Below, one piece after another: positions 18,098 to 64,000 of a stretch of DNA of 64,000 nt. Within the stretch, counting starts at the first letter, position 1. Each line of letters begins with the position of its first letter. The notes beneath the pieces were generated by a model. That model was not told where the DNA came from. It saw nothing but the letters and a program-made list of their open reading frames with translations, and did no database searches. The translations under genes and the position numbers were made by a program. This stretch comes from Oculina patagonica (lineage: Eukaryota), in the NCBI RefSeq assembly GCF_052425735.1, contig NC_135758.1, positions 25,978,001-26,042,000 on the forward strand, read 5' to 3'.

Positions 18098-18123
18098 GTT
18101 GTAGATGGAAACGATAATGAGGT

Positions 18124-19941: not shown

Positions 19942-20032
19942 TAGTCCAGTCCCTGAACTCTCCCTACCCCCGCCCTGCATGGTTCAACCCCTACATAGGG
20001 CTCGAAAAAGAGCGAGTTCAAGGACTGGACTA
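19942..20032. mobile_element. 91-bp MITE nested in a SINE, 9-bp TSD
   Basis: TIRs TAGTCCAGTCC.TGAACTC ... GAGTTCA.GGACTGGACTA; TSD CTTCATGCT at 19933-19941 and 20033-20041. Confidence 0.8.
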
Positions 20033-20072
20033 CTTCATGCTACGAAAACCGAGATAAGCTCCGGCCTGAAAG

Positions 20073-21462: not shown

Positions 21463-22172
21463 GTTAAGTCTGCGTCGAGCCAAGTGGCCCATACCGCCGG
21501 AGTTATCCCGGTTTCCGTGGCGTGAAGCGACTAAGAGTATTTTTACTTCCCACTAGATGAAATGCTAGGTCATCGCAGGGTTACCCCCCACCATTACTTT
21601 GCCGGTACCCATTTATACTCCTGGGTGAAGAGAGGCACAAGTGCCTTACCCCCGGGGGGGGGGGTACTCCATATAACGGCCTATACGGGGAGGCTCCGCC
21701 CGAAAGGGGTACCTTTTTCAGGCTTCAGGTATATGAAAGGGTAGCGATTTCACAAGTTTAGGTATATGAAAGGGTATGAAAATCCGTCATTAAGGTTTTT
21801 TAAAAGGCCTGTAAAATATTTCGAACAGACGCACTTTATGGCTGTATTATTTTAATTTATTAGGCACTACATAAAAATGACAAGCAAACGTCCTGTTCTA
21901 AGGATATGTCACGTCTTTTAGGTATATGAAAGGGGTACCTTTTTTCAGTAAAAGGTATACGAAAGGGGTACAATTTCTGTCAAAATGGTATATAAAAGGG
22001 TAAGGGGTAAGAGCATGGGGCGGACCCTCCCCGTATAAAACTTTTTTGAGTGCCCCCCCCCCCCCCCGGGGCCTTACCCAAGAACACAACACAGTGACCC
22101 CGTCCAGAGCTCGAAACCGGACTGCTCGATCCGAAGTTCAGCGCGCTAACCCTTAGGCCACCGTGCCTCCCA
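21463..22172 (-). mobile_element. tRNA-derived SINE interrupted by a MITE
   Basis: The two halves (21463-21650 and 22071-22172) join into the same SINE seen at 17390-17686. Confidence 0.75.
21651..22070. mobile_element. MITE with 8-bp TSD
   Basis: Termini CCCGGGGGGG / CCCCCCCGGG; TSD GCCTTACC at 21643-21650 and 22071-22078; internal AAAGGGTA repeats. Confidence 0.8.
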
Positions 22173-22546
22173 CAATCACGAGTATGATTACAGAGGAAAT
22201 CGGACGACAAAAAGCCTGGTACCAATAATCGTTTGCTGTTCATGGATCGGTTCAACGTTTAGAAGGCTAAAAAAAAGTTACATTTGTTCCGTCAGCGAGA
22301 GGCGTGTCGTTTAGTGGCGTGAAGTGTATATGCTGAAAAAAAAAACTGAAATCTACAGGAATCAAAAGTTATTCTTGCTCTTAAAAATAATTTGTGTAAT
22401 TTTTCAAAAATAGTGTGCTGATGTAATGCTAACGAAAAATGCTATGAAAACTTCTAGAATAATAATATTGGAGTGCTTTTAAACCGTTTGAGAGAAGTAA
22501 TCAAAAAACTGGCCCCTGGAGTAACCTCTGGAGAGTAAACTGTACC

Positions 22547-23134
22547 TAGGGCTTTCCACAAGTTGCTCGAGATTTCCAAAAAAGTTGCCCGTAATTTCTC
22601 AAAAAGTTGCTCAAAAGTTGCTCCAAAAATACAAAAAAGTTGCTTCTGATAATAAAAGTTGCTCGAAAGTTGCTCCAAAACGCTGCTTCTTATCTCTAAA
22701 TATATGCTAATTTATCTTTGAGAGTAAGATTTCTAAGCAGTTTTATGCACTTTTACAGCAAAAGAAGTATCTAAACAACATATTAGGGGGAAAATTTGTC
22801 AAATAACAAGGAATTCTTGAACTGAGAAAAATCGTGATGATATCGATGACGTCATGTTTGTGACGAGTTTTGTAATGTTTTAATATGCAGAATGAGCCGA
22901 AAGGTGGAACGTCTTCAGATGTTCCTCGAAAATCTTCGGCAAACTTCGTAAATCTTCGGAAACGTTCGTATTGCCTTTGAACAACACTCGGATTATCTTC
23001 GGAGATCTTCGGTCTGGAAATTGCTTAAAATGCAAAAAGTTGCTCGAGAGAGAAAAAGTTGCTTGAAGGGGAAAAAGTTGCTCGAAACATGAAAAGTTGC
23101 CAAAAAGTTGCCGAGCAACTTGTGGAAAGCCCTA
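22547..23134. mobile_element. hAT-like non-autonomous transposon in the DNAJA promoter region
   Basis: TIRs TAGGGCTTTCCACAAGTTGCTCG ... CGAGCAACTTGTGGAAAGCCCTA; 8-bp TSD ACTGTACC; subterminal AAAAGTTGCT repeats. Confidence 0.85.
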
Positions 23135-23324
23135 ACTGTACCATCAACTGGAACCTAATCTCCTTACTCTGGTAGCCACAAACGAGAAGTACTGGGACCA
23201 ATATTGCGACATTCACATGCGGAAAGCTCAACACACATGCGTCAGCGGAAAACGAAATTGTGGCAGATTTTCAGAGTTGAGGAACTCAATTTCCTTGAAA
23301 TAAAGACAACGTTTCACTCTAGTT

Positions 23325-39938: not shown

Positions 39939-44269
<4,331 letters not shown>

Positions 44270-45125
44270 CATCTGACTTAATAAACCATCCATGGCAACG
44301 AAAGCCGTTATATTGCACACGTTGAAATAAATCATGAGAAATTGCTAGGCAAAAACAAAAAGGATCCGATTGACTTGCAATGCTCTTTGATCAACATCTG
44401 AACACCCAATGTTCGCCAAAACGTAGAGTCGCATTTGATAACAGCTCTGCTCTTTTAAAAGAACGCGTTGAGTTGGACCCTGCCTTACTTCAGTCGTTAA
44501 TTTGAACTAAACTGAAGCACTCTTTTAGAGGTCGAAAAACCTCGTCCATTGGCCTGATCAGTAGCCTTCTACGCAGACGCTCTTTGTGCTCGACACGTAA
44601 TAGAATACGTGATGGGCACAACGAGCCTCTGGGTAGGGGACTACCTTATGTGACATTAGTCACGGAAGAGATAGCTAACGCTATCTGTAGACATCAAATA
44701 CCTCAAAGAGCGGACAGTAGATGTTGAACGGCTCTCCGAATGTGGAATCCTTCGAGAAATTGTATTTACCTATAAAATTCGGTGAAGTTTGTCATTTTAT
44801 GTTTTCAGTCACTACTTGTATATAGCGACCACTTATGTAGAAGCAATGTACAAAATATTACTGTTTGTACTATGAGTGAGATATCACTGTTTTCCCATAA
44901 GCCTGCATTACGAATCTGGCTTTGCATTTCGCTTTTGTCTATCTTGCTCAGCTTCGTGCCTTGCGACGGTAACCTGATTAATTCAACTTGACAAATAATA
45001 AACGCGTTTCCTTAGAATCTCCACAACGGGCACCCACACGGCAAACACGTAAAACAGTATTATAGATATTTTTGTATCATTTTTTTACTGATGTTTTAAC
45101 CGTGGTTAAATAAAGTTTTATCCAA

Positions 45126-45183
45126 TTCTATTCTGTTCTAGTCTAGTCTAGTATTTTCTAGTCTATACTATTCTATTCTATTT
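45126..45183. repeat. Degenerate pentanucleotide microsatellite (TTCTA/GTCTA)n
   Basis: Direct reading. Confidence 0.7.
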
Positions 45184-47677
45184 TACTTAATCTCACGCAG
45201 TTATCGCAGGCTAGACTATCTGTGAAGGTTTGTGATAAAACAGAGACCACAAGAATCCTCATAGCTATGTTTCTATTCCAGGTCGTACAAATTTTTACAT
45301 GGATAGTGGGGTCGGTAGGGTAAATAAAAGCAACCGAAACGTTTCTGACCCCCTAAACGTAGAGACTCCTCTAAAGTAAATAACCGTTACCTTTTTAAGT
45401 CCAAAGTCTCCTCATTATTTAAAAAAATTTTGCAAACTCCTGTGGACAAACACCGATCTGTGAGAGTTTCCACCACGTAACACAACTGGTATAGGTACTG
45501 AGTGCCTATCTCCATGTGCACCCAGGAGTATAAATGAGTTTTGCATCTGATTCCTCTGATCTGGAGTTATCCTTCCTTATCTTTCTACCACCAAGACGTT
45601 TTGTTTGTCGTTAAAATATCGCTAGAAGTCGAATGCTCGTAGCAAAAGAGGGAAGACCGAAGGGCTGGGAAACAGTACCCGAGTCGGACAGGGAAGCAGG
45701 CGAGATTTAATATGTGGATTGTCTTTGTAATGTGTCATTTCCCTTCGTTCTCTTCATTGTAGAAATATTGTACTTAATTGAGAAATAGCAGGGACTAATG
45801 CAGATATGGTGCTTAAAGAATCTTGCCCAACCCTAGAAAATTACCGCACAAGTTTCCAGGTGCAAAATGGCACTTCATTATTTGTTCGTCAGTAGCAGAA
45901 ATGCCGACGTGTTAGATACCATAAAAAAGTTTAGTGTCCTGGCGAGTGAATTAATTGACTATTATATTAGAAATGACCATTGTATCAGAAAGGTATAACG
46001 AATGCTACGAAACCTTTTTGAACTTTTCAAATAGCTGTACAACGCATCCTAGAATGGGACCTCCAGATCGGAGAACGTGTACGCCTTTCGAATTTCAATC
46101 CAGTTACGTTTCTAGAACCCTCACTCGTCCCTGGTGTTGACCAGTTGAAAAGGAGACGAGATTGGTGTGAAATGTGATATTCGAAAGCATAGGCACTAGG
46201 CCAAAGTCGTGCTCGTACTCAATCTCGTACTCGTACTCCAATCTGAAGGTCCCTATGAGCGAGCAATGCGATGCTCGATCTCGACAGCAAAATGATAGCA
46301 GTTGTAAAAGTGCATAGTAATAACGCCTCAGCTCCCCCCCCCCCCCCCCCTACCCCCTCTCTCCCCAAAGTCCCTGAAAAAAGGAGTTTTCTTTGAAAAA
46401 CAAGAGACAGGTTTGGGTATCCACCATCGGTTTGTATTTTATTCTCGTGCATGGTTAAAAGTTGCAAAAACCAGGCAGCATTCTTCTGTCTCTACGATCT
46501 AAAAAGGCACGCCTTTCCCCTCTCATCCGCATCTTTCCAAACATCATAGGTTATCATGAAACAAGGATGAACTGATGGCAGAAGTAACTACAGATCAACA
46601 AGACTATTCTCATGAAAGTACGTCAATTCCTTTATTTAACATTGTTGTTCTGTAGTTAAACTTTAGAACATTGCTCAAAAAGTCAATCCTGTTTTTTTTG
46701 TATCTGTACATCCTTCATACTCAATGATATCGTTGTATACATATCCTGTAACCTGAGCCTGAATTTGTTTTGGTATTCATTTTCTCCTGCCATAAGTTTT
46801 TTGTCAATAGCCATTTTTTTGTTTCCTTGAATTTTTGCCGCCATAAGCCATAAGTCAGTTTCATGTTTTTTTTTGTACTTGATAGAGTTTTTACCGCCAT
46901 AAGTCAATACGTATTCATTTTTTTGTTTCGTCAGTCAAAAGTCGTAAGTATTCAATGTTTTTGTAGTCCGCCATGAGTTTATGTAGTCAATTTGTTTGCA
47001 CTTGGTTTTGTTTCTTGTTTCACTTTGTTTCTTTGCTCTTCTTTGTTAATGTTTTGTTCTTCTTTCGCTTTTGCTTGTATTCTTTTTGTTTCTTTATGTA
47101 ATCCGCTTGTTCACATTGTTTCAATACACTTTCAGATGTCTGGAAATTCTCAAATTGCATCACTTTTATCACGTCATAAATTTCAAAATTGTTTAGTTTC
47201 GCAGTTTTATAATTTTCCTCATTCTTTGAATATTAAACAATGGTACGTCAATGTTGATGTTTCAAACCACAACCAAAATTTCACACCTTTTCAATACCTC
47301 GTTTTTCATTTTTTTTGTAATTTTTCTTTTTCGTTTTTTTTTTTTATTTTTTGAATTATTTTTTGTTGCTGTTGTTGTTGTTGATGTTTTGCGCAAGTCC
47401 TTTTGTCTTCGTTTCAGTGGGATAGAGACACAGTTATTCTAGACAGCAAGTAAAGGCTAGTACTAAAACGCAGAACGTCGGAACACCATGGCACAGCCCG
47501 GCTGGAACACCCTTGAAAACGCTGACCACTAACCACAAACCGCTAGCACTTATCCTAACCCACAACACCTTGTTTTGGGTGCTCCGCCGTTCCTGGTTTT
47601 GGTACAAGCCGAAAAAAAAAGAAAAAAAATAAGGATTAAAGAAAGATAGAAACACAGTGTTAGCTACCCTACAGAAC

Positions 47678-47829
47678 TGGCCCGGGTTGTTCAAGGGGTG
47701 GATAACGTTTTCAACGGGATAAATCACTATCCAGTGGATAGCGTAGATTGTTTTTCTCAACAGTTATCCACTGGATAGCGATTTATTCGGGGATAGAGTT
47801 ATCCACACATTGAACAACCCGAGCCCAGT
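47678..47829. mobile_element. Palindromic MITE
   Basis: CTGGCCCGGGTTGTTCAA...GGATAAC / GTTATCC...TTGAACAACCCGAGCCCAG with internal TATCCA.TGGATAG motifs. Confidence 0.75.
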
Positions 47830-47973
47830 TTTTTTTCTTGCGCGGCCGGTGACAAAATGAACCTGGAGGGGAATGGAGAGGAGGCTTCCTCACCATTCCT
47901 CTCGCAGCTTCACCGCTATTTTCTTAGTCGCGCAAGACTACTAACTACGCAGCAGACCTAGTTAAATGTTTGT

Positions 47974-50223
47974 CTACCGAAAAAAAGTGGATTCCTTCAA
48001 CTTTTGAACCACTTCAGCTATTTCCTTCTTGACAAGCAAGCTGCTGTGATCAGACTCTGAATTCTGTTGATGCCACACAAGATTGTATCGCTCTTCCACA
48101 TGGTTACAGAAATCTTCCTGAAAAGAAAAGAATTGTATAATATAAACAAAAAGCTTGTTTAATACAGTCGAACCTCTCGCCTAGAAAAAAACTGTGACCT
48201 TAAAAATATGTTTGTATGCAAAAGGAATCGTCCTATATTGAAAGTTGTTTGTTTTGTTAAAACATACAGTGTTTAGTTTTTGTTGTAAAGATCAGATCTT
48301 TACAAGTGTATTGAAACCTTAATTTTGGGAATTGTTAAAAGTGTTGGAATGATAGTTATGTAATATTTTGTGAAACCAAAATATTGGTTAAAAATGTAAA
48401 CTCGCGTTTTTTGCCTCGATAATTCTCTCATTTCGAGATAAAACGGTTAAGCCACAGATGTCCGTATTTTTCCCGGCAAAGCCATAGATGTTTGTATTTT
48501 TCTCGGAGTAATTCTTGGTGCTTCTGCTTCGCCGATTCTTCGCAAACAATGTTCTTGAATGGACCATAACAGTGATTTTTCCGCCGACGCAAGCATCCTC
48601 GCCGAGCCAGTAATCGTTTTGATACGTCCTGAAAACGCTGAGTGCATCCCGGGAGTGCATCTCGCCTTTCCAGCTTTCTATGAACTCTCACCGCGCAGAA
48701 TTATGAACAAATAAACGCAGAGATCTAGTTGACCGTGGGGCATGTACTAAAACCCGAAACAACGAAACGAAGCCACCGAAACGAAACAACCGAAACGACC
48801 GAAACGAAACCGCCGAAACAACCGAAACGGCCGAAACGAGCGAAACTAAACGAAATCACCGAAACAAGCAAACCCATTACAATTATTAAGAGCTAACCGT
48901 AAACAGGCTAACCGGATTGCATAGTAGGCTAACCTAAGTGAAAAGAAGGCTAACCGGAGTGTGTAGTAGGCTAACACGAGTGTATAGTAGGCTAACCGGA
49001 GTGTATAGTACAGGCTAAACTGAGCTTGTTTCGGAACTTTTGTTCCGTTTCGGCCGTTTCGGTTGTTTCGGCGGTTTCGTTTCGTTGTTTTGGGTGTTAG
49101 TACATGCCAACCATGGATAGTCTATGAGTTAACTTGCAGTAGACTCCCAGGGGGGAAATACGTTACGTTCATAACGGCAAGTTTGGATTCTGCAGTAGGA
49201 TACACTATGATCCGTTCCAGTTTCGATTCAGGGAGAACCTTACTCCACGAATTCAAGGGGTCTTTGTTAGATTTCAATGATCTTCGTTTACCAGACACCC
49301 TGCGGTGACATGTCTAGTAGACTCGCCTTTCCATTGGACGACGATATGAATCGAATTGTTCAAGAACGTAACACTCTGAATTGATATGCAGATTAGGGCA
49401 ACAACTTCCGCCTTTCAGTTTCGCTTTGGACGTATTACTGGGAATAAGTTGCGCAGTTCTAGGAAAAATGAGACGTTTTGCGAATTTTATAAAAAAAAAA
49501 AACAGTTAAAATAAATTAAAGAGGACTCATTTTTATTAAATTTATTTTTTAGCTTACCCAGTTTCCCAACTTTATCATCCGTGCGCTGAGTTTGTCAGCC
49601 GCAGTGAAACACAACTCCATCAGTTCATTCCGGCGTCGTTCTGCGTTCGCTGAAGCTGCGAAGATAACTTCTCCGGCAATAACAACGAGCATAGTTAGTT
49701 TACTCCAAGGCGAAGATTTTTCACTGCGTCGACCAATTTCTTCTTCAAAATCATTCAACACTTTTTTGATGTTCTTGCTTGATTCGACAAATGTTTTAAC
49801 ACTTGTGATATCAAATCCATCTCGAACGATTTCCTTCAGCAGATATCCGACTGTTTTCTCTACAGAATCCGAGCGATGACATAAATCCAATCCTAGCCTC
49901 TTTCTCGTGTAGAAATCTAAAAGAACCGTTAGATCTCTTTTAGTTTCAAACACGGTCAACTCTTTGGCAAGATCCAATCGCTGAATTGCAAGCAGACCTT
50001 CCTTCAAACTTCTTACATCTTCCCACGAAATCATTCCAACATGTTCTAATGAATTAAGAGTGTTTAAAAATCCAGTATCTTCCATCGGAATCAGACCAGA
50101 TCTAGAATAGTAGAAACGAAGCTCCTGTTGCTGAGCTTGATCCAAATTGCGAGCAATCTGGAGCAGAACTTCAGCGTACGTTTGTCGAAGTTTATTGTTA
50201 GTACCCTCGTTAGTTAGTGACAT
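47974..50223 (-). CDS. DED-containing protein, A-type copy 1 (N-terminal death effector domain plus an uncharacterised helical C-terminal region), 269 aa
   Basis: Exon 1 49558-50223 (GCCGCCATG start, donor GTAAGC); exon 2 47974-48117 (EDFCNHVEERYNLV...FFR*). DED pattern Y..LL.I..NL......L.F......L..LE....IS..DV..LKE.L..I.RLDL..EL, including the RxDL motif. Confidence 0.8.
48739..49108. mobile_element. Foldback-like MITE in the DED-A1 intron
   Basis: Long TIRs GGCATGTACTAA.ACCC.AAACAACGAAACGAA...; internal ACCGAAAC and TAGGCTAAC tandem motifs. Confidence 0.75.
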
Positions 50224-50499
50224 GGCGGCGTCATCTACGGCGGAGAGGCCGAACGAATGCATACCTAACCTTTTATATCCAAGAATTGTAAACAAACACT
50301 CTGATAGGGCATTGCTATGTGTACGACGAAACCACGGCAACAAAACACTCTAAAGATAGGCACGCAAAGCATGCAAAATTATTTTTAGATGAAGAGGAAG
50401 TCCCAGAGGCTGCGATCCTTTGGGTCACTACCAGAGAATCGGAGCCTGTTGGGGTCGGTAATGACCGTGCACAGGTCTTTTGCCACCAGAAAAATTTGG

Positions 50500-50720
50500 A
50501 ATTATGGCATCCTTTTCACTTACGTACTGCATGTTGAAGTACCAGGTTGTTTTCAAGTTGTTTGTCATCAAGCGTTTTAGGTCATTACTCAACGATAAGC
50601 GAGAAGCAATAAGGCACTGGTGAATTGGGTATAGTCGATGTTAGATCTATGATGTAAGCATATAGTGATGGTGATATATGTTCAGGTTTATTGAGTTTTT
50701 GTATAGTGATGCGCATGCGA
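50500..50720 (+). pseudogene. Decayed B-type DED gene copy, head-to-head with DED-A1
   Basis: Aligns by eye to 61430-61606/62335-62360 (YCMLKYQVVFKLFVIKRFRSLLNDKREAIRHW* ... FRFIEFL); stops and frameshifts present. Confidence 0.65.
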
Positions 50721-50889
50721 ACACTTTCAGAAGACACTCAAACGTGTTTTTTCGCAATCCACGAGTCTGATTGGTTCTCCCATTGTTGGAAGACCATATC
50801 AAGTTCAATAAAATTAAAAAAAATAAGTAAATGTTGTTTTATAGTGGTCATGCACTTAGTTTCAAGATAGCTAGTTTACAGGCATGCCA

Positions 50890-51103
50890 CTGAAACAGAG
50901 GAAACAAATATTTCATATGAACATAAAAAGGTTAAAAATCCCCACTGGCAGGAGGCAGACCAGTAGGCTATATACAAAGCGTGATCGAGGATTTGAGCTC
51001 GGGACTACCGAGAAACAAATCTAGATAGTGGAAGGGGCAGGTATTGAATCCTGAACCTTCGGATTACAATACCAGCGCCCTAAATCAATCGGTCACGCTT
51101 CCT
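50890..51103 (-). mobile_element. tRNA-derived SINE (third family; related copy at ~35680-35865)
   Basis: Reverse tRNA-like head and AAAAATCCC..CTGGCAGGAGGC body; absent from the paralogous segment near 63170. Confidence 0.6.
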
Positions 51104-52281
51104 TAAAGAAAGTGGATGAATTTCGACAAGGCATATAAGTCAGGAGATTTTGGATAGCGCGATTCTGACTTTTCAGTTATTGTAAGTAGTCTTTGGTTAC
51201 TGACTACATTGCTGATTAAGGGTCAATGTATGCTTTGTTAATCAGTATATTTAGCAGAGAATAAATGTGCCCGGTAACAAATTAAACGCAAGAAACTACG
51301 ATTCCGGACAAAAGCTTGGTACACTTCACCGCTTTGACGAAATTGGGCGTTGTCGTCACCTTCCGCTCCCCACCTCCCAGTGCAATGCTGATTTCTATCC
51401 ATCCAACCATGCAACCATATGTCATCATTGTTTTAGGAGGAGCGTGGTTAGGAAAATTTAACTTAACTCGAAAGGATGTGTCACTGGTCACTATCTCGTT
51501 AACTTAACGAGATAGTGACCCATTTTAAGGACTTTTGTTTAGAACTGTAGACAAGGTATATTTATAAAACTGCCCTGACAGTGACAAACTCCAGCGCCAG
51601 CATCTATAAAAAGCTACTTTGTGAATGAGACCACAAACTATTATATCCACGGGGTGTTTCTAGGCTACTGAAAATAATAACAAGTACAGACACTGTAAAC
51701 GTAGTATCGTTTATTGAAAGTTCCTCAAACGGTTCATTAACATGACATGACAATCTATAACCATTATTACGACGAGTATTTTTATTATATTTGTTTCAAC
51801 TGTTTGACATCAAAATATTTCCATTTTGTTTGCACTTGGTTTTTGTTTCAATTCTTTGTTACGCTTTGTTTCTTTGTTAACATTTTGTAATTCTTTGAAA
51901 TTATGCTTGTATTTCTCTTATTTACGTTTTTAGGTCTTTTCCAATACCTTGTTTTTCAATTTTTTTTTTATATTTTTTAAATTTTCATTTTTATTTTTGT
52001 TTTTGTTGTTGTTGTTTTGAAAATTTCCTTCCATTTGCTGTTGTCCCGTTATTTTAAGGCACCAAACACTCGCCTTATCACGTTGCATTTTGCCGTTGTC
52101 GCTTAGCTGCAGTAGGACTGCATTACCAGGGTTACGACGAGGACGTGCGACAGCCGACTTGGTAGCAGAGCCTATGATATGGTGGGTTATTCTCAACACT
52201 TACAAAGTACAGTGCATCCCACCTAGACCCATTACCACCCTTCAACCCCGCAATCTATCAGTCTGTTTGTCTTAACATGTC

Positions 52282-55200
52282 TTAAGTAATCTCGTTGAGA
52301 TTACTTTTGTCTATTCTTGAAAAGAATTCTGTTAGTTTTTTGACCACTTCTGCTCTCTGCTTCCGCAAGGATAAGCCGGGAGTGGGCTCCATGTCCTGTC
52401 GATGGTAAACAAGACTGTATCTTTCCTTCACTTGGGAGCAGAAATCTTCCTGTAAATAAAATAAAAAGGATTTATTCAGAGCAAAAATATCTGCTCTCGG
52501 TTTTTTCCAATAAAGGCTTTGCGATGTAGCCCGTATTTGGAGCTTGTAGGTTGCGCTCAATTCCAGTATTAGCTGTAGACTCTTAGCCAATAAGAAAACA
52601 GGTATTGACTACAATGTATAACTAGCAGTAACCAATAGTTAGGAGGTGCGGGCAGCCTGTTTTTTGCGCGATTGAGGATAGCGTGGGAGAAGCGAGGGAG
52701 ACGCGCAGGGCTACGGTTTCCTGCTGTTGATGCGTATTTGAGTTCCTTCTTAGATGTATTTGATGGTATTCTTATGCGAATTTGCGCCCTAGAAATTTTA
52801 ATTATATAAAAAATATGTTTATGAAATGCATTATTACTATTATTATTAGTTGTTGGTAATATTATTACTCTTACTATGATTTTTGTACGGATTACACAAA
52901 GTGTGTAGAGAAGATTAGAGAAGATTGAAAATATTTACAAATCACGGCGGCGTGAAACAGCGTAAAATCGCTTACAATACTGCAGAATTCCTAGGACAAA
53001 ATGAACACAAGCAACGCTTTCAACGCTTTCCTTTACTTTTAATGTTAATAAACATACTCCTTTGTATTTTCTGAAGCATTGTAGTAACAAAACAAAGCGG
53101 CTAAATAAACAACTGAAGCAAGTCCCGATAAAAGATGGGTGTCAGATAATAAGCAATTATTGGATGAGGTTGAGCATGATATCGTGAATTATCAAAACCG
53201 AGGTCTGTGTTATCTGCCGAAGCCGGAGGCTGAGGCAGATAATACAGACACGAGGTTTTGATAATTCACGATATCATGCGAAAACCGAATTCAATAATTG
53301 TTTTATTATACGTTTTTAAACAATTTGCCATCACTTTTTCTAGCGCCGGCGTAAACTTCGTAAGAATATTGGCCAAAGCGGTTTTATCTTGTGGTTCCTC
53401 CAGGTTCTTCTTTCTCAAATAATCATTCAGAGTTTTTACACTTGTTTTGGTTGTTCTCTTGGTGTTTTTTAGAATCTTTGTTTTCGATCGATCTTTAAAT
53501 TCCTCTTCGGAATCGGAGGCGAATCGCTCAGCCATATTTTCGAAAGTTTGACAGCACTACACGGACGAGGGGTTTGGAAACTAGGCGGACTTTGAACTCG
53601 ACATGATAACCCAATCATGTCAAGTTCACATGCTACTGTATATTGACTGAATGCTCTCGACCAATCACATGTTTCAAAGTAATTCTAATGTATAATAACA
53701 ACAAATGCGTGTCAAATCTGTTTGGCTTCACCGTGAAGTCTAAAATTCCGGACTTAAGATGGAAAAAGGGAGAAACTTGAAAGAAACTTTGTTTCATATT
53801 AATTTTCGGTTAAGAGGAAGCCAAGAAATGTAAGCTTATTCAAAAGCGTCAAACATCGAAAATTTCAAAGCCGTGCAATTCGGCATACAAGAATTATTCA
53901 CTGTGTTCACGGTAAAGCGAAAGTTTTGATTTCAGCCAACGGCTTCTGCAGTCAATTATTTACTCAATGGCTTTACCGATCCTTCTGACAATTCCATCCA
54001 AACATTACCATTTTGTTCTCAGAAGTCTTTAGAAGCCGCATTAAGTCTGTGTTCAAGTCTGTGATGTGCATTCAAAACGCATTTGGAAGTGCCATGACAC
54101 CATGTCTTCGCGGCCGTGGAAGGAAGATGCATCCTTCGTCAGCGGCAAGGTTTTAGCGTTCTGTACTCGATGATTTTCCATTTGACAGCTATATCTTACC
54201 GAGATTTTGCAGTTTAGCCTCCCGTTGCTTGTACAAGTAAACGCCAAACGTGACATTCGGAACAGACCTTGAACTCAACACCAGGGCCTTTGCTCCGCCG
54301 TTTAATTTGCTCACATTCCAGTTGGAAGAACAAAGGAATATCAAAAATGTGCCCACATTTTGCTTCAAGTCGGCTAAGAAAGTGCCGCTGACTCCAAGAA
54401 TAGTCTGCGGGCTTGCTTTTGCTCGCCCGCAATAATATATCGTATACATCAGCAATGTAAATAATGTTCACCGAGCACGACGCGTTTTAGCCTGCGAACA
54501 GGCGGAAGCCTGTTCGCAGGCTAGACGCGTTTATAGTTATAAAGTTCTAGATTCGAATCTAGATAATCCTGCATAACATATCTTTTAAAAAGATATAACT
54601 TCACTGAACTCGGATTTGTGTTTTTTCTTCTCAAAGTACTCTACTTGTTCGATTGGAATGGATAATGGGTCATTAAACGAAAGAGATAAATGTGTTAAAC
54701 AATTGAATACACGGAATAAAATATGCAAATTCGCCTTTCGGTCCCGTTCGGACCAACGGGGAACTAAGCAGACGAGAGCAGACGACACTGATCGCAATCT
54801 AGCATTATCGGCATCAAAATCGATTAAAATTGTAATATAACGTAGTGCCACCGACGAATGGTATTCGTCATGGACAATGTTCTGTTTTCATAAACCTATA
54901 TCGATCGCTAAAATGTCTTCCGCCTTGGACCTGGTTTTTCTTTCGCTTTCGTTCTGGATCATTATTCAAAGCCTGTGTGGCGCACAATGACACATTTTAC
55001 AAAATACAAATTACCTTACATTTGTTATATGTCGGTTAGCTTACCCAGCTTCCCAGTTCCGTCATTCGAGAGCAAAGCTCATCCGCCGCAGTAAAACACA
55101 GCTCCACCAACGGTTCTTGTCGTTCTTCGTTCATGGAGGCGGCAGCTATGATTTCTCCAGCAATAATAACAAGCATAGTAAATTCACTCCAAGAAAACGT

Positions 55201-55704
55201 CAGTTCTCTACAGTCGATCTCCTCTTCAAAATCCACCAACACTTTTCTCATGTCTTTACTCGATTCCACTGTAAAGCTGATCTCTGTGATGTCAACTTTG
55301 TCTCGAACCACTTCCGCAAGTCTCGCTAAATACCCAGCTACTCTTTTCACGGCTACAGAACAACACTGTAACTCTGATTGTAGAATTTTCCTCGCGTGGA
55401 AATCCAGAAGTAGTGTCAGATCGCGCTTGATTTCATACTCGGTCAACTCTTTAACGATGTCAAATCGTCTGATTTCATGCATAGCTTCTTTCACGAAATT
55501 CACATCTTCCCACGAGATCTTTCTCTCGTGCTCTAAAGTATGAAATATGTCAACAGTATCAGTAACGTTTGTCGAGACAAGTCCGTTGCAGTATTGACGA
55601 AGCTTTCTCTGATGTTTTTTACTCAAATTAAATGAAATCTGAAGTAAAACACCATTGTAAGTTTGTCTCAGTTTGTCAGTCACAGTATGTGTCGAAGGTA
55701 ACAT
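52282..55704 (-). CDS. DED-containing protein, A-type copy 2, ~275 aa
   Basis: Exon 1 55045-55704 (GCCGCCATG; in-frame upstream ATG at 55716); exon 2 52282-52449 (EDFCSQVKERYSLV...). Same intron position as A1 and clearly paralogous to it (KLRQTY..VLLQI, ISWEDV, RFDIVKEL, KRDLT.LLDF, W...TMLV.IAGE.I, ELCFTAAD.L..RM..LG.W). Confidence 0.8.
53148..53697 (-). mobile_element. Non-autonomous Crypton-like (tyrosine recombinase/DUF3504-type) fragment in the DED-A2 intron
   Basis: ORF 53266-53535 MAERFASDSEEEF...KNTKRTTKTSVKTLNDYL...LANILTKF, continuing after a frameshift as YAGARKSDGKLF; resembles the N-terminus of Crypton/DUF3504 proteins. Boundaries approximate. Confidence 0.5.
54488..54523. mobile_element. 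36-bp minimal TIR element with 9-bp TSD
   Basis: TAGCCTGCGAACAGGC-GGAA-GCCTGTTCGCAGGCTA flanked by GACGCGTTT at 54479-54487 and 54524-54532. Confidence 0.8.
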
Positions 55705-55746
55705 GGCGGCTGTCATCAGTCAGTTGTGCTAAGCGAGTGCATTCCC

Positions 55747-57079
55747 CAACCTCGTTCCCAGGGCCTCTCTCCTTTTCCTCCCTTGTCGTCGAGGAGAGAG
55801 ACCCTGGTTGACCCTGGTCACGTGACCACCTAAAATCTGGGTGGTAAAAAAATAAGCTGGTAGGGAGGGGTAACAGAGTCTTTTTTCGTCCATGTGACAA
55901 ATCTACCATGCCGGGGTGAGAGGGTTTAAATAATTGTTCCCACCCGTCAGCGGGTGTTTTAAATTGGCGCTTTGTTTCCAAAAAAAAAGGACCACCAAAA
56001 AAGTTCTTCTTTTACTCCGTTGACTCGAGTTTATGCCGGGTTTGTGCGGAGGTATGTGACAGTGATCGCAGCAATAATCTGTTCAGTGAAGAAGTGAACG
56101 GAACAGCGTTCTTCTTGCCGTGGCCGAAGCGCTTCACGGAAAGTTGCTACTTCGAGGAGATTTTCCTCAGTTTAGTAATAGTGTGTAGGCATTTAGTTTT
56201 GAATCGCGATTCAACTATTCTTTTTGAAAACTAAGCGGGCAATATTATTTTAGGTTCAAGTTCTTACTACGTGCGAAGAGTTGTACACGAATTTAATTTT
56301 CGGCTTCGCAACGAGTTACTTTAATTTCGACTTTAAGCCGTAAATTTTCCCACAGAAACTAAAAGAAATTCAAATAGTGTATCTAAGCAAGGTTTTCCGA
56401 AGTGCTGAGCAACGACAAAACAGAAAAGATTAACCAAAATTAACTTTATTTAACGTGAACTTGTTCTAGATCTGACAAACAAGATTAATACGCCATCTAT
56501 CGCGAGCAAGCGCACGCTGTAAATTACAAACTGACTGTTTTGAAGTATTTTCAAACAATTACCTGCCTTTCCTCGTCTTCATCAAGCCTCCTTTTACTCT
56601 GAATAACTCGTAGAGATGAATAAGTGTACGGCAAAAGTTGTTTGAACTGTGCAAACGGCAAGAGAGAAGGAGCTTATTGTAAAAGTTTTGAATTTCCATG
56701 CGTACGTGAGCGGAACCCGATACAGCGCAGCGACATCAATTTCAATTTTAGAACCAAAAAGGCCCGGGAAAAGGCTGTTTCACTTTTAAGGTAATATTGA
56801 CGTCGTATCCAGAAGAACACAACGCTTTCAGAAGACAACTGGCTAGAAGAAAAACACACTTGGTCTATCAGCCGCCATTTTAAACCAAAATCTTGCATGT
56901 CCCTTCAATACCCTGGAGAGTAATTTTTGTTCATCTTGACAAAATTGGTTGAATGACCCACCCCCGCTGCGGTATTTTTTTGCCACCCAGATTTTGGGTG
57001 ACACGTGACCAGGGTCAACCAGGGTCTCTCTCCTCGACGACAAGGGAGGAAAAGGAGAGAGGCCCTGGGAACGAGGTTG
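55747..57079. mobile_element. Non-autonomous DNA transposon with ~110-bp TIRs and 9-bp TSD (Mutator-like by TSD length)
   Basis: Ends CAACCTCGTTCCCAGGGCCTCTCTCC... / ...GGAGAGAGGCCCTGGGAACGAGGTTG; TSD TGCATTCCC at 55738-55746 and 57080-57088. Confidence 0.9.
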
Positions 57080-57158
57080 TGCATTCCCGACCTTTTATAT
57101 CCTAGAATGTTAAACAACTCCAAATAAGGGAAGTGCGATGACGTGGTTTAGAAAACCT

Positions 57159-60100
57159 CAACCTCGTCCCCAGGGGCTTCTCGGTAAATGGCAGTCGTTA
57201 CGAGATGACCCTGGCCAAGGCTGATATAACGGCATCGCAGAGTGGTCTATTCTAACCTCAATCCTGATTGGTTCATGTAATCCAAAACAAATATGGCGGA
57301 CAAGAGTGGGTCTTAATGGGGTCGATTTTACTTGAAATTTAAGCCATTTACAGCTGCAAAGGTAAGTCTTTTCCAATATATTTATAATTCTTAAGATTCA
57401 AATAATTCGGTAGAAGTAGAAGCGTTAAATTCACTTCATTGCGAACTTTTCGCTTTGCTGTTTTGACTGTTTTATAACTTAATATTCCTGCCGAAAGTAG
57501 AACCTAGTTCTGTCGGAAAGTAACATTCAAGATGAAAGAGTCATTTCGACACCGGGCTGCAGCTATGTACGAGATGCAAATCTAAAACGTAAAGGAATTT
57601 CTGCCCGTCGTAGACATAGTTGGACCTAAAGTGCTCGTGTTCTTTTTCGGAGGAAATTCGATTTCAATTTGTCGCGTTCGAACACATATCATCACCCATT
57701 CACTGTCTGCATTCTTCCGAATATGATATTGGTGCTTTCTAAGGGTCTGTTCTCATTATGAATTTATTTATACCACTCCTTTTTTGTAGGTCCTTATACA
57801 AGTGGTGGACGTGTTTTAAATCATGCTCAAGTAGTGCTGGAGAAAATAGGTGACCAAAGGAGATAAATTAAGCGTGTTAATAAGGGATCTATTAAAATAT
57901 TAATTAATTAATGTGAAGGATAAAAAAACTTTGGTCAATTTAATTTCTTTAAAAAATTAAAGTTGTATCGTGTACTGTTCTCAGAATATGTTGTCTCAGA
58001 CTTGCTTGCTTTCCCTTTTACAGTTACCTCATGATCAGTAAAGGCTGATTGCAAACATGACAGACAGAGTATATTGAAATTTAAAAACAATTTGTAACAA
58101 AATATTTCTGATGAAACTTGAGGTATTTGAAAATGTGATCAAACACTTAAATGAGACTAAAAAAGAGAAAAATCAGGAAAATAAAACTACAAAATATGTT
58201 CTTTGTGAGGTCATTTACCTATCTCACTGTCATAGTTTTGATTTGTCTTTAGGTTCCCTAAATGGATATTTTATAAGGAAAACCTTATCAGTGTACTGTT
58301 TTAACGTGGCTCATTGCACATCAAAACCTGAAAGCATTGTACTGTGGAAATGTTTGGGAAGTCATGTGTCACTTGGATGATGAAGCCCAGCCCTGTTTGC
58401 CCCAGCAGGGGTACTTAGGGTTTCAAGTGACAGGGATGATAGAAGGATTTTTTTGGGTTTGACAGTTTCGGTTCCGGGATTTTTTTGGGTAGGAAAATTT
58501 GTAAGTATTTTTTTTTTAATAAAAATAAGGGAATTAATTTTTGGTCCAGGGATTTTTTTGGGCTTCTGTGGGAAGCCCTAGGGATTTTTTTGGGTCTTGA
58601 TTTTTGCGCTCATTCGATCATCCCCGTCACTTGAAATCCTGAGTACCCCCTGGGCTGTTTGCAGCCTTTAATGCCTATGCTAGATAAGATGCAAAACATT
58701 TCTTCCTTTCACAAGATTTGCTATTTTCCAAAAACTTTGCTGTGGCAGTGCATTGCTTTAACAGTTCATACTTTTTTTAATTTCAAGTATTATTTTCTAA
58801 TCTTTTTCATGCCAGCAATAGCTACTTAAGGCCAAAATGGCTCTGATTTCTTTACCCTATCCCAGACAAAATTGGTTAAAACCCCTCCTCCACATACAGC
58901 AATACGCGCCTATGTAGAGCTTCAAATTAGATATTATGTACCACCTTCACTCTCTTGTGATAAAACAGGCAGCATTTTTTTGAAACTAACAGAACATGAT
59001 CATCATAAAATTAATATTTACAAGGCTGAAAAGTGATTAAAATCCACAGATGCCATCTACGCAAAAATCCATTTCACTCTCTTGAGTGATTAATTATTTG
59101 CACAGCACAATCTTTTTACAAGTATGGGATCACTGGAGGCCAAATGATCCAACAATGGCATTCAGAACTAACAAGTCTATTCTTATGTTTTAGAGCTCTT
59201 TTCATGGGGATAAACAGTGTCTGTGTGGACAGTCTCACAAATTTTAAAGATGACTGTTTTGAGTCAAAACAATTTTTTTGCTCCTGTTTAAAGAGTGTAG
59301 CTGGGGGTTGAGGCATGGGGCGCCCTTTACATCCCTCTGTGAGACAATTTAAGAAGCGAGTGTAAATTGTTTTTAGGTATTTTAAAACAGGAATTTTCTA
59401 CACAAATTATGCCATTTTGGAATTTATGACATCAATGTATTGCCCATTTGTTTCACGCAAAGAATGCATGCTTCCTAACAATACAGTGGAAACACACTGA
59501 TGTCAAAAAGTCCAAAATGGCAACATGTGGGAAATGTAAAAGTGATCATCTTTTAGCATTTTGTATTCTGATAAAATGTTAAATCATCCTTCTCCTGTAA
59601 AATTTGTGATTTAGACATCATTTCAAGCAACACAACATTAACTAGCCTGCCATATGTGGTCACAGGTGTAATCCCAAGTTCTACACCCTGTTTAAGTCTA
59701 TTATGTGCATAACTATGTGCATAACATATTTGAAATGAAAGTGTCAATATTTTAAACTGCTGTGGTAAAAAAGTTAAAACTAATTCCAGAAGATTACAGT
59801 TATGTGGGTTCACCTGTTTTGATGTACAAAATAGCCACTCAAGTGGATGTAAATATCTCAAAATTTCAGTTAGAACTTCACCTCATGTAAAAGTTTGTAA
59901 AACAAAGTGAAATTGGCCTCAACTAAGGTAAGCTTCAAACATGTATAAATTTGAGTTTAAGCTTTCAGGGGGAGCGATTGCAGAATACCCGGTCACTTCA
60001 TTTACATGTGTCCGAATGCTTTAAAGAATGAGGCATAACACAACAGGCACTTTGTTATTCAATGAGATGCAAAAGAGTGGCCGGGTATATGGCCATAATA

Positions 60101-60951
60101 TGGATATGGATATTTCATAATTTCAGTTACAACTTCACCTTATGTAAAAGTTTGTAGAACAGAGTGAACTTGGTCATATAAAAGCGAAAATGTATGAGTT
60201 TAGTTAAAGCTTTTAGGGTCAAGGTTATGTGTATCACTGTAATAAGTTAGAATGAATTATAAAGCAGAAAAATTTGCCACCGAAATCGATTGATATGTTG
60301 ATCATACATTTGTAGGGTATTAAGCACACATTTTGCCTCTTTACCTTTAAGCAGCTAAGTTTTAGTTTCTCTTGCACTCAATCAAAATACAGAAAGTAAA
60401 TATATTAAGACTTAAATAACAGTACATAGACTACATAAGCTTACAGACTGTGTAACATTTAATTTTTTTACTTTCCGTACCTTCCCGATTCTCATACCTC
60501 ACGGTCTACATTCGAACACCTGGCGAAAATAACAGGGTTTTCAAAACAAGCGGGCAGCCGCCGGAGTTCCACCAGCTACTTGATTTTTGTCACCAGTTTA
60601 ATGGTCGTAGCAATCAGCTTGTAAGAAACAAGCTTGGCTTGTCACAGTCGCCTACTCTTCCAGTTGCTGACGCCTACTTCAACATTTTGAAATCCCTGAA
60701 ATAATATCTATGCTTTACGAAGTAATCACTGCCTCCTGCATGAAGTTTACGCCCTCAAACGCCGTCGAAGAGTCAATTCGAATTCAAACTGGACCGCCAT
60801 TTTGTTTTGGCTTCTCTGAAAAGTCACGTGACAAAAATCTCCAAGATTTTTGGAGATTTTGTACCACGTGACCCAGCCTTTGCCAGGGTCTTCTCTCGAC
60901 GAGCCGCCATTTTGAAAACTCGTCGCCGAGAAGGCCCTGGGGACGAGGTTG
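57159..60951. mobile_element. 3.8-kb non-autonomous DNA transposon with related termini and 9-bp TSD
   Basis: Ends CAACCTCGTCCCCAGGG / CCCTGGGGACGAGGTTG; TSD AGAAAACCT at 57150-57158 and 60952-60960; no intact transposase ORF; contains a nested MITE. Confidence 0.88.
58401..58654. mobile_element. Nested MITE (same family as 20073), 8-bp TSD
   Basis: TSD CTGTTTGC at 58393-58400 and 58655-58662; TIR GGGGTACT.AGG.TTTCAAGTGAC. Confidence 0.8.
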
Positions 60952-61375
60952 AGAAAACCTCTTAGCAACCATGAATAATACATTTTGTTGGGTAGGAATG
61001 AGTTGCTCAGTACAATTTTATAAAATGGCAACCTCGTTCCCAAAGCTCTCTCCCTTCATCGAGAAAATTCTTTTCTTTCTAAGAAGAAGAAAGGGCACTC
61101 TGGTTGATTAGTTGCATTTTTTTTAATATATGATTTGGGTTAACCATGAAAAGGCCTTATATCAGTCTCTTCCATTTATAAGGACTTCCGAAAGGAGTTC
61201 TATAAATAAACATGGATAAATACAGACAAACATCAACGAAGCAAGACACTACAACTGGTGCCCAGGCCACTCCCATTCACGAGAAAGTGAAAGTGCTATG
61301 CATAACGATTGCCCGGATGTTTTCTGAGTATTTATTCTTGCGCAATTTTTTGCACGAATAACTGTTCTTGAATCA

Positions 61376-62611
61376 ATGTCAGTCATGGCGTTGCGTCCGG
61401 GTCCAGAAATTTCAAGATTGAAATCGTCTCATCCACTTGCGTACAGCATGTTTAAGTATCAGCATCCTATTATTTTTAAAAAGTTTGTAGTCAATTTTGT
61501 AAGGTCTTTAACTATCGATGATCGTGCAGCATTTAAGCACTGGTGTATAGATCTAGTTCCGGGATCGAAGTTAGATGTTAACGTGGAGAGCGACAGTGAT
61601 ATTTTTACGAGGGTCCTGAAGGGGGGGGGGGGGGGGTACAAAATCCTATTTCCCAGCCCAGATTTTGCCCAAATCCCATTTCCCAGCCTATTTTTTGTCC
61701 AAATCCCATTCCCAGTAGTAAAATTCCCAGTGTATGGAAAACCGGGCTTAAGCATAATATATTTGTTGTTTTGATTGTAATAAATGTAGTCCACTCCCTG
61801 AACTCTCCCTTCGGTGAACCCAGGCACAGGCGTCGTTGAGCGAGTCCAAAAGTTAATATTGACCTGCATGCGCATTCTCAGAATTCTGTCAGCCCCAGCC
61901 CCCTCGCCCCCAAAAAATGGGGGGGGGGGGACGGGGGGGGGAGAGCTGAAGAAACTAAACCATAATCGACAGCACGTTTGGAAACGCACGCACAGATGTT
62001 AAATTAAAAAATTTAGTACTTGTGGGTTTAATACCTATTCATTATGGCTTTAGACAAAGGTTCCGACAATTTTTCTTGCAGATGTCGCGCTAATTAGTTG
62101 CGTAGTTGAATTTTTCATTTTAGCGAACTATTTTTACCCTAGTGCACACGTTGCATTAAGAAACGCCACACAAATATGCAGGTTTAGTCATGTACGGACA
62201 TGCTTCCCATTCCCATTTTTTGTTTCCGAATCCCAGTCCCAGTGACCTAAATCCCATTTTCCCAGTGAAAAAATAGGCAAATCCCAGTCAAAATAGGCAA
62301 ATCCCAGTTCCCATTTTACCCCTTCAGGACCCTCTTTTAAGTTGATTGAGTTTCTACTTTGTGCTAATGAGTTATCCTTTACTAATATGTCAGTTCTTAA
62401 AGAGTTTCTGTCGAGTGTTGGTCGCTTTGATTTTTTAAAAAAGTTGAAACGAGTCGAGTTGCGTATCTCTATTGGAAGCATTTTAGAGTGTTATGTTCTG
62501 CGTAAAGGTAGTTCTGATATGAAATATTTTGATTGTTATGCGAATATCGTTGAGTTTTTGCTAAGAACCCGAGAAGAATACGGCGGAGAGACCGAACAAA
62601 TGCATGACTAG
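61376..62611 (+). pseudogene. B-type DED gene, interrupted by a MITE and truncated at a rearrangement breakpoint
   Basis: 61376-~61606 (FKKFVVNFVRSLTIDDRAAFKHWCIDLVPGSKL...SDIF) joins in frame to ~62339-62580 (KLIEFLLCANELSFTNMSVLKEFLSSVGRFDFLKKL...) once the insert and its duplicated flank are removed. After RTREEY the sequence switches to a copy of the A1 upstream region. Confidence 0.75.
61609..62334. mobile_element. 726-bp MITE inserted in the DED-B coding sequence
   Basis: TIRs GAGGGTCCTGAAGGGG ... CCCCTTCAGGACCCTC; flanks TTTTAC/TTTTAA; internal AAATCCCA repeats. Confidence 0.85.
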
Positions 62612-64000
62612 CCTTTTATATCCAAGAATTGCAAACAAACACCCTGATAGGGCATTGCTATCTGTACGACGAAACCACGGCAACAATAGTCTAAAGATAA
62701 GCACGCAAGGCATGCAAAATCATTTTTAGATGAAGAGGAAGTTTCTCTCCCAGGCGCAGCGATCCTTTTGATCAGCACTCAGAGCCAGAGTCCTGGGACG
62801 ACAATGATCATGCGCACTTCCTCTATCCTCCTACGTAAATTTACAGTCATGGCGTTGCTACCAGAAATAAATGAAAGCGTCCTTTTCACCTAAGTACTGC
62901 TATTGAAGGGTCCGGTTGCTTTCAAGTTGTTTGTGATCAAGCGTGTTAGGTCATTACTCATCGATAGGCGAGAGGCAATTAGGCACTGCTGTATTGGGTG
63001 TAGGTCTGGAGTCGATGTTAGGTGTAATCATATAGTGATGTTCAGATTTATCGAGTTTTTGTATAGTGATGCGCATGCGAACCCTTTCAGAAGACACTCA
63101 GACGTATTTTATTCGAAATTCAAGAATCTGATTGGTTCTCCCACTGTTAGGAGATCATATCAAGTTAAAGCCCGTGGATTAATTTCGACAAGGCACAAGT
63201 AGTAACGCAAAAATTCTGGAGATTTTGGATAGCGCGATTTTGACTTCTCATTTATTGTCAGTAGTCTTGGTGAATTTTTATTATTAAGGACACTTAAATA
63301 ATGACTTCTCAACTCGAAAGGACGTGTCACTAATCACTATTCCGTAAGACTACAACCTTGGAAAAGACTGTTGAAACACTTAGCAAATTTCCACTAATTT
63401 AGCTAACAGAGTTCAGTTTTGCACCCCTCCCCCCTCCCCCATTTCAATGTTGTTAATGCTGTAGTGCTTTTAAACCAAAGCCTGTCGAACCGCAAACCCC
63501 AAGACACAACATTGAGTAGGGGGAGAGGGGGATAAAATATTTTTACCCGCTTACAGTTCAGGATATTTGTGAAAAATGCGTGAAATGCGTTTGTTTCAAC
63601 TAGTTTTGTCCAAGATTGTAGGTATGTTTAACGAACCGCCCTGACAGTGACAAACCTCAGCGAAAAATAAAGCATCTTTAAAAAGCTTTTTTGTGAATGA
63701 GACCATAAATTATTATATCTGAGGGGTGTTTCTAGGCTAATTGAAACAATAACAAGACACTGTTAACGTCGCATCTTTTATTGAAAGTTCTCTAATGGTT
63801 CATTAACATAACATAACAATCTATAAACATTTTACGACGAGTCCTTTTATTATATTTGTTTCAACTCAGTTTGACATAAAAAAATATCCATTTTGTTTGC
63901 ACTTGGGTTTGTTCAATTCTTTGTTACGCTTTGTTTCTTTGTTAATATTTCGTAATTCTTTCAATTATGCCTATATTCCTCTTGTTTAAGATTTTAGGTC
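62579..64000. repeat. Segmental duplicate of 50236-51936
   Basis: Similarity starts at TACGGCGGAGAG in both copies and continues, with indels, to TTTTAGGTC at the window end. Confidence 0.9.
62849..63080 (+). pseudogene. Third, decayed B-type DED copy
   Basis: FKLFVIKRVRSLLIDRREAIRHCCIG...MFRFIEFL is homologous to 50500-50720 and 61376-62360; disrupted start region. Confidence 0.6.

Follow-up and report, generated by a model that had tools for sequence, protein, structure and literature searches.

The proximal end of a tandem gene array on a chromosome of the stony coral Oculina patagonica in all likelihood carries members of a coral family of fusion proteins, in which a death effector domain (DED) is followed by an anchorless and divergent domain of the Bcl-2 fold, and which consists of two old paralogous subfamilies, A and B, arranged head to head. 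The stretch of DNA analysed (the window) comprises 64,000 nucleotides, namely positions 25,978,001-26,042,000 of the chromosome-scale contig C1. The array starts within the window, at 46.6-64 kb, and was found by a search of the same genome to span ~70 kb with eight A-type and five B-type loci. The original prediction, made from the sequence of the window, had described a repeating head-to-head module with A on the minus and B on the plus strand, and its structural claims all hold; the exon 1s of all eight A-type loci are on the minus strand. It had also taken the C-terminus to be of an unrecognised kind, a point on which the present analysis departs from it. A DED-Bcl-2 fusion is a more interesting outcome than an unknown C-terminus, and the window shows the decaying edge of the family.

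A single fully open B gene, B5, is present in the array against six to seven open A genes. B5 (ACROYT_G002228, 282 amino acids, 100% identical to the GenBank model) lies 24 kb further along the array, head to head with A5 across a spacer of ~0.5 kb; another B-type locus, B6, is frameshifted. The features of the two A genes of the window, in window positions, are the following.

49558-50223, minus strand: A1 exon 1, encoding the DED (about residues 25-112 of the 282-residue model) and the Bcl-2-like domain, with a BH1-like PWSKLTMLVVIAGE and the BH2-like end KLGNW
48118-49557, minus strand: A1 intron, phase 0, right after the BH2-like Trp codon (TGG followed by GTAAGC)
47977-48117 (47974 with the stop codon), minus strand: A1 exon 2, 47 codons and stop, from tblastn of residues 236-282 at 100% identity
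50269-50280, minus strand: A1 TATA-like box GGATATAAAAGG, read directly, kept also upstream of A2 and A5
55045-55716, minus strand: A2 exon 1, 224 codons, DED and Bcl-2-like domain, identical to ACROYT_G002221
52450-55044, minus strand: A2 intron, phase 0, after ELGSW, at the same position as in A1
52285-52449 (52282 with the stop codon), minus strand: A2 exon 2, 55 codons and stop, from tblastn of residues 225-279 at 100% identity
55714-57078, no strand assigned: transposon-like insertion with 108-bp terminal inverted repeats (55747-55854 and 56973-57079, 96%), not found in the colinear A5-B5 module

The two domains of the A and B proteins

The N-termini had been predicted to be DEDs, and both Pfam and structural comparisons bear this out. 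With Pfam cut-offs of 35.9 bits for DED and 31.4 bits for Bcl-2, the DED of A2 scores above the cut-off (40.8 bits), followed by A1 (30.7-32), B5 (21) and the C-terminal half of the B2 remnant (19.3); in the family, DED matches were obtained for 66 of 67 A members and for all 33 B members. In the AlphaFold model of A1, built on 67 relatives (pLDDT, the predicted local distance difference test score, 76.6; 75-77 for the A1 and B5 models), residues 25-112 match the DEDs of PEA-15, MC159, caspase-8 and FADD with Z of 12-13.4 and a root-mean-square deviation (rmsd) of 1.3-1.5, and the B5 model matches the FADD DED with Z of 11.5, all DED fold matches having rmsd values of 1.3-2.0 Å over 84-88 residues. 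An RxDL-type motif is found in helix 6, as RLDL in A1, RFDI in A2 and R(L/F)D(V/F/L) in B, in alignment with RHDL of FADD, and in the A alignment R95 is nearly invariant and D97 invariant. Regarding the helix-2 patch of FADD (F25/L26), the equivalents are F-Y in A1 (by eye), Q-Y in A2 and H-W in B, i.e., one aromatic residue is kept at the L26 position and the full patch is not. The arrangement of tandem DEDs with a caspase or pseudo-caspase was not found, the proteins having one DED only and no peptidase C14 match, and a caspase or death domain as C-terminus was rejected for want of such matches.

With regard to the C-terminal domain, residues ~100-250 of the A1 model match NRZ, KsBcl-2, Trichoplax trBcl-2L2, Hydra HyBcl-2-4, CED-9, Bcl-xL, Bfl-1, BOK, BAK and Mcl-1 over 130-144 residues with Z of 9-11 (VIA-align), and the independent B5 model matches Bcl-2 proteins with Z of 9-10.9. 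In the VIA-align top 50, all matches of A1 and B5 outside the death-fold are cellular or viral Bcl-2-fold proteins and cover the whole domain, and the top Foldseek matches are Mcl-1, NRZ, Bcl-xL, BAX, BAK and CED-9. In sequence the resemblance is faint: Pfam Bcl-2 is matched below threshold by 21 of 67 A and 16 of 33 B members (37 of 100 in all; best E 3e-5, in a distant member), with no match for A1 and 14.9 bits for B5, and searches of Protein Data Bank sequences with a single sequence or the family profile gave only the DED as significant, Bcl2l10 and Bak appearing at E of 0.1-0.8. A profile of the A and B domains compared by hhalign with 11 canonical Bcl-2 exons of the same genome nevertheless gave a probability of 89% and an E of 2.3e-6 over 68 columns comprising alpha-4, BH1 and BH2, and brought both the BH1 Trp and the terminal GGW into register. 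At the BH1 position, where B carries SQLSWSTVISSLVI.GE and A the sequence listed above for A1, the Trp is nearly invariant, whereas the N, G and R positions hold other residues (PWSK in A, SWST in B). At BH2, exon 1 of B ends with W(I/M)LENGGL, a textbook W-x-x-x-N-G-G motif, and that of A with the reduced form RMxxLG[SN]W.

Gene structure points in the same direction. The canonical reference set consisted of 14 O. patagonica loci (L032-L045) above the Pfam Bcl-2 threshold, in 12 of which the BH1-BH2 exon ends with GGW followed by GT(A/G)AG and in one with GGL followed by GTAAGC, like the B type. The A and B exons end with LG(S/N)W and W(I/M)LENGGL, respectively, each followed by GT, and all their genomic frames read on as W or L and then VS; the intron is thus in phase 0 directly after the BH2 Trp or Leu codon, a position shared with 13 of the 14 canonical loci. 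No membrane anchor was found in the tails, the top 19-residue hydropathy of the last 60 residues being -0.24 to 0.61, and the only hydrophobic stretch is the core helix; in A1, exon 2 encodes alpha-8 and an amphipathic tail (top 19-residue hydropathy 0.11). A C-terminal transmembrane anchor is typical of the Bcl-2 family, though not universal in it. Among the canonical loci, L041 and L042 are near-identical copies 40 kb apart on C1, and L044 and L045 match identically, L045 being on a small unplaced contig.

From the fold matches, the profile-profile E value, the BH1- and BH2-like motifs and the intron position, we conclude that the C-terminal domain of A and B is a true but very divergent Bcl-2 homologue. 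The earlier view of A and B as distant paralogues even beyond the DED is supported.

Several observations weigh against this interpretation of the family. As to the domain, no member exceeds the Pfam Bcl-2 cut-off (best 24.9 versus 31.4 bits), no canonical Bcl-2 protein came up when 1.84 billion representatives were searched by HMMER with the C-domain profile, NWGR of BH1 is reduced to its Trp, with Arg replaced by Lys in A and by Thr in B, and Z values of 9-11 can, by the tool's own note, be reached by chance for helical bundles. As to the genes, no O. patagonica run on record as RNA was found for the region, and a 1.36-kb insertion lies between the TATA-like box and the start codon of A2. 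The scores that never pass the threshold, the canonical relatives that are not retrieved and the middling Z values would also fit a generic helical bundle resembling Bcl-2 by convergence, the proteins then being plain single-DED adaptors like PEA-15 or DEDD. This is very improbable, however, in view of a profile-profile match that puts BH1 and BH2 in register, an intron equal in phase and position to that of almost all canonical loci of the same genome, the textbook motif in B, and two independent models whose structural matches outside the death-fold are exclusively of the Bcl-2 fold.

Gene models, distribution and constraint

A1 and A2 are contained in open frames at 49549-50343 and 55036-55716 (minus strand) that are 52% identical to each other, and they are 100% identical to the GenBank models ACROYT_G002220 (282 amino acids) and ACROYT_G002221 (279 amino acids). 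A1 is intact, as predicted, and, with translation from the ATG at 50223, has the predicted length of 269 amino acids; the start of the GenBank model, at 50262, is 39 nt upstream. The TATA-like box precedes the GenBank start by only 7 nt but the ATG at 50223 by 46 nt, and the latter is therefore taken as the likelier start. A2 is likewise intact, with a length of 279 rather than the ~275 amino acids given before, and the two genes share their intron position as had been noticed, both exon 1s ending with G(N/S)W before GT. A 7-codon second exon of A1 just past the donor was rejected and is replaced by the conserved exon 2. In A2, the 1.36-kb insertion has displaced the conserved TATA-like box (57091-57102) from the start codon, the distance now being 1.38 kb, so that A2, despite its open frame, may be mis-regulated. 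In Rfam scans covering 44000-64000 and the 3' flank of A2, no ribozyme or other credible RNA family came to light, and no convincing alignment was obtained between the 3' flanks of A1 and A2 beside their stop codons.

The HMMER search with the C-domain profile yielded 91 clusters; all of the 20 scanned carry an N-terminal DED and none is a canonical Bcl-2, and judging from these 20 sequence clusters out of 91 the C-domain seems to exist only as a DED fusion. Among named members, the family is known so far only from stony corals, in five genera of both major clades (Oculina, Desmophyllum, Stylophora, Montipora and Acropora), where the database labels are "uncharacterized" or "DED domain-containing"; its range may be wider. 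We could not find this architecture described: a full-text search of the literature, including Moya et al. 2016 (PMC4715348), Zmasek 2007 and Kaur 2021, returned no DED-Bcl-2 fusion, and Moya et al. 2016 make no mention of one. The Bcl-2 part is invisible to standard annotation and is missing from published coral Bcl-2 repertoires.

The head-to-head layout recurs in four other coral contigs (Desmophyllum pertusum and three more), with A on the minus and B on the plus strand and the start codons 190-460 bp apart; by this recurrence the layout is old and conserved. Both partners are open in D. pertusum and in one other contig. Two further contigs combine an open B with an A partner that contains stops, and one of these also holds the reverse case. 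The original prediction had stressed intact A genes with repeatedly disabled B partners. This is no property of the system, for B5 is intact and A is the pseudogene in two other coral contigs: the pattern is a local accident of the window, and loss strikes either partner.

Among A paralogues, the ratio of non-synonymous to synonymous substitution rates (dN/dS) is 0.19-0.43, even with dS around 2, and all eight pairs compared have a lower value for the Bcl-2-like domain than for the DED; as far as substitution patterns tell, the frames of A1 and A2 are selectively constrained. Regarding expression, public runs from other corals include contigs of 1-2 kb with uninterrupted exon 1-exon 2 reading frames (several proteins), and genomic contigs always read into the intron as W-V-S, which is why the former are taken as spliced A- and B-type transcripts. 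In runs labelled "RNA?", depth is even over non-coding sequence, as would be expected of DNA.

A cluster of decaying junk, with the open A frames as young pseudogenes devoid of function, would account for the three broken B copies, the A stub and the several transposon insertions described below, one of them in the promoter region of A2, and it would agree with the search that returned no RNA run of O. patagonica for A1 and A2. It is hardly credible in the face of dN/dS values that stay low at such a dS, of orthologous subtypes whose frames remain open in corals of five genera from both major clades, and of spliced transcripts in other corals.

Broken B copies and turnover of the array

The remnants and insertions in the distal part of the window are as follows.

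50486-50808, plus strand: B1 relic (N-terminal part of the DED), with five stops in the 64-codon match at 50516-50701
51148-51261, plus strand: faint further B relic
57149-61028, no strand assigned: second insertion in the A2-B2 spacer, 3.9 kb, with imperfect inverted ends (57157-57223 and 60874-60953)
61376-61608, plus strand: N-terminal part of B2 (DED helices 1-3), 64% identical to B5 residues 1-72
61609-62334, no strand assigned: element inside the B2 exon, 726 bp, non-autonomous, with perfect 16-bp terminal inverted repeats
62335-62578, plus strand: second part of B2 (DED helices 4-6 and start of the Bcl-2-like domain), 65% identical to B5 residues 69-154, with a partial Pfam DED match
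62579-62713, minus strand: stub of an A-type 5' end (leader and first codons, no gene body), the start of a block similar to 50236-50808, its translation resembling the upstream frame of A1
62849-63202, plus strand: B3 relic, only about the first 78 codons recognisable, one stop, truncated like B1
63620-64000, minus strand: A2-like 3' flank, part of A3, 84% identical to 51554-51936

That the three B copies of the window are all broken is confirmed for B1, B2 and B3. In B2 the damage is of the kind described, an insertion of a miniature inverted-repeat transposable element combined with truncation: the 726-bp element interrupts the exon, and homology and colinearity to the intact B5 stop abruptly at 62578. 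On the simplest reading, a single deletion at 62578/62579 took the 3' half of B2 together with the whole body of the next A gene, and one deletion would thus have killed two genes. B1 and B3 had been ascribed to decay, and relics they are; that they decayed independently is rejected, since the same truncated remnant lies within a duplicated block (50236-51936 versus 62579-64000, 76-84% identity), which makes them one old pseudogene copied once. A2 and B2, now 5.7 kb apart, were once a normal pair with a spacer of ~0.5 kb, for the A5-B5 module is colinear with the region from A2 to B2 once three insertions (55714-57078, 57149-61028 and 61606-62335) are removed.

The state of B2 elsewhere was assessed by aligning the contigs of four runs to 58001-64000 of the window. 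A 971-base contig of run X6 (98-99% identical) joins 61602/3 directly to 62335/6, which represents the empty insertion site, and a 593-base contig of run X2 (92-97% identical) shows the same join. Past 62578, these contigs run on for 502 (X6) and 142 bases (X2) in sequence absent from the window. Another NCBI genome has a near-identical, uninterrupted version of the B2 exon. From the empty-site contigs and this uninterrupted exon it follows that the B2 damage is recent; it could be a polymorphism, a lineage-specific change or, in part, an assembly problem. The element ends are highly repeated, with a depth of 13,000-24,000 in run X19. In the RefSeq model LOC144643445, isoform X3, the element is spliced out in frame between a GT at 61596 and an AG that ends at 62327, with five residues exchanged, and the model then continues into B5, 25 kb off; the element may have turned from transposon into intron there, or the model may be an annotation artefact.

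It can be asked whether the truncation at 62578/62579, and perhaps the element too, is haplotype-specific or a misjoin, B2 being intact in most Oculina genomes. The X6 and X2 contigs, lacking the element and diverging from the window past 62578, would fit this, as would the near-identical intact exon in another genome; furthermore, no contig among those listed for the four runs crosses the 62578/62579 junction, and three of the four runs (X1, X2 and X6) have zero depth over 62601-63000. The window is, however, part of a 49-Mb contig, and the junction falls exactly at the edge of the duplicated block, as expected of a real deletion; the contigs omit rare variants, a filter leaves some records out, and the runs may represent other species or populations. 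On balance this explanation is rather unlikely.

Two observations were made on the 3.9-kb insertion in the spacer. A short repeat at 58408-58650 is also present at 15697-16088 and 20100-20526 (78-89% identical), and each of the four read sets contains it in extreme abundance, its depth reaching 48,000. In run X19, depth is ~210-300 over 58.0-60.7 kb (58001-60700) and 11-16 over the B2 and B3 pieces (60961-63172), and in runs X1 and X6 it is similar in both regions (~17-97 and 27-32); the contrast in X19 may mean that the insertion is multi-copy in one genome only or that X19 contains RNA.

The third A gene that had been predicted just outside the window is present, exon 2 of A3 lying 581-706 and exon 1 1986-2672 bases past the window end. 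By its content the array supports birth-and-death evolution, as originally proposed: its evolution is one of duplication, transposon insertion, deletion and decay, and the locus shows the fast turnover of an immune-type cluster, with transposon insertions in promoter, spacer and exon. Two extra A1-like DED fragments on the minus strand, 63-67% identical to A1, are further debris of this turnover; one lies 2683-2892 bases past the window end (C1, 26044683-26044892), just upstream of A3, and the other 27275-27475 bases past it (26069275-26069475), head to head with the frameshifted B6.

Proposed function and comparison with known systems

DED proteins on the extrinsic and Bcl-2 proteins on the intrinsic side are the two pillars of animal apoptosis, and in corals cell death controls bleaching, symbiont sorting and disease. 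To our knowledge, the two pathways communicate in vertebrates only indirectly, via Bid cleavage or scaffold proteins. The A and B proteins would be soluble cytosolic regulators, the DED of which could plug into DED assemblies of the FADD/caspase-8 type and the Bcl-2-like domain of which could engage BH3-type helices or other Bcl-2 proteins, so that a single polypeptide might couple the extrinsic and intrinsic pathways as recruiter or decoy. As a mode of action, such a bridge between death pathways is put forward tentatively and falls a little short of probable. The spacer shared by A and B could act as a bidirectional promoter giving co-expression of both. With this constrained, divergently paired DED-Bcl-2 family, a link between the two death pathways can be tested directly in corals.

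Regarding the relation between A and B, the Arg of NWGR is the BH3-binding residue of canonical Bcl-2 proteins; at this groove position A keeps a basic Lys and B has Thr. The B tails share (I/F)(K/E)LLG(N/H)R(V/I)D in all five spliced exon 2s, a motif that is BH3-like with Asn for Asp (by eye) and that the A tails lack. As A keeps the Lys and the B tails carry the motif, a contact between A groove and B tail is conceivable as a speculation. A prediction of the A2-B5 complex gave a score of 0.00, i.e., no answer, and counts as evidence neither way.

It could be supposed that A and B form an obligate two-component module, binding each other through DED-DED or groove-helix contacts and working only as a pair, like head-to-head plant nucleotide-binding leucine-rich repeat receptors (NLRs), an A gene with a dead B then depending on the remaining intact B. 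In keeping with this, the short-spacer layout has been kept in Oculina, Desmophyllum and three more coral contigs, both types are retained across stony corals, one fully open B remains beside the open A genes, and the motif of the B tails could dock in the groove. Yet inverted duplication alone would give the layout, and the decay of either partner while the other stays open, together with unequal A and B copy numbers, fits independent or loosely coupled paralogues equally well; an obligate pair is therefore considered doubtful. Still less likely, and offered as a long shot, is a coral-private soluble DED-Bcl-2 switch, in which A and B would form a heterodimer with the BH3-like helix of the B tail in the A groove and the DEDs free or masked, a FADD/caspase-8 filament would recruit and open the pair without a Bid-like intermediate, and the rapid array turnover would stem from an arms race with pathogens or symbionts manipulating host cell death.

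Among paired plant NLR genes, RGA4/RGA5 and RRS1/RPS4 are arranged head to head. The coral genes resemble them in forming divergent paralogue pairs with a short shared spacer in birth-and-death clusters, but the proteins are unrelated and without NB-ARC or LRR, and either coral partner may be lost. For a sensor/executor division between A and B no evidence was found, the divergent layout alone being established.

Compared with the DEDs of FADD, PEA-15, DEDD, cFLIP, vFLIP MC159 and caspase-8, those of the coral proteins are alike in fold, in the RxDL-type motif and in the aromatic residue at the FADD L26 position. Unlike in FADD, caspase-8, cFLIP and DEDD, the partner domain has a Bcl-2 fold and is not a death domain, a caspase or pseudo-caspase, or a DEDD tail; unlike the tandem-DED proteins cFLIP and caspase-8, the coral proteins carry a single DED, and FADD F25 is kept only in the A1 type. 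With the multi-BH Bcl-2 proteins (closest in structure: zebrafish NRZ/Bcl2l10, Mcl-1, trBcl-2L2, HyBcl-2-4, Bcl-xL, BAK and BOK) they share the helical fold with its central hydrophobic hairpin, the BH1 Trp, the BH2-type W...GG(W/L) end (clear in B, reduced in A) and the phase-0 intron after the BH2 Trp or Leu; they differ in the added N-terminal DED, the missing tail anchor, a degenerate BH3 region, the replaced NWGR Arg and scores below the Pfam threshold.

Lastly, BAR (BFAR) and BAP31 are vertebrate membrane proteins that link caspase-8 signalling to Bcl-2 by non-covalent binding via other domains, and Bid is a BH3-type protein cleaved by caspase-8. No homology of the coral proteins to these three was found, and none of them is a covalent fusion of a DED with a Bcl-2 fold; what they have in common with the coral family is the logical role, one side being turned to DED/caspase-8 and the other to Bcl-2.

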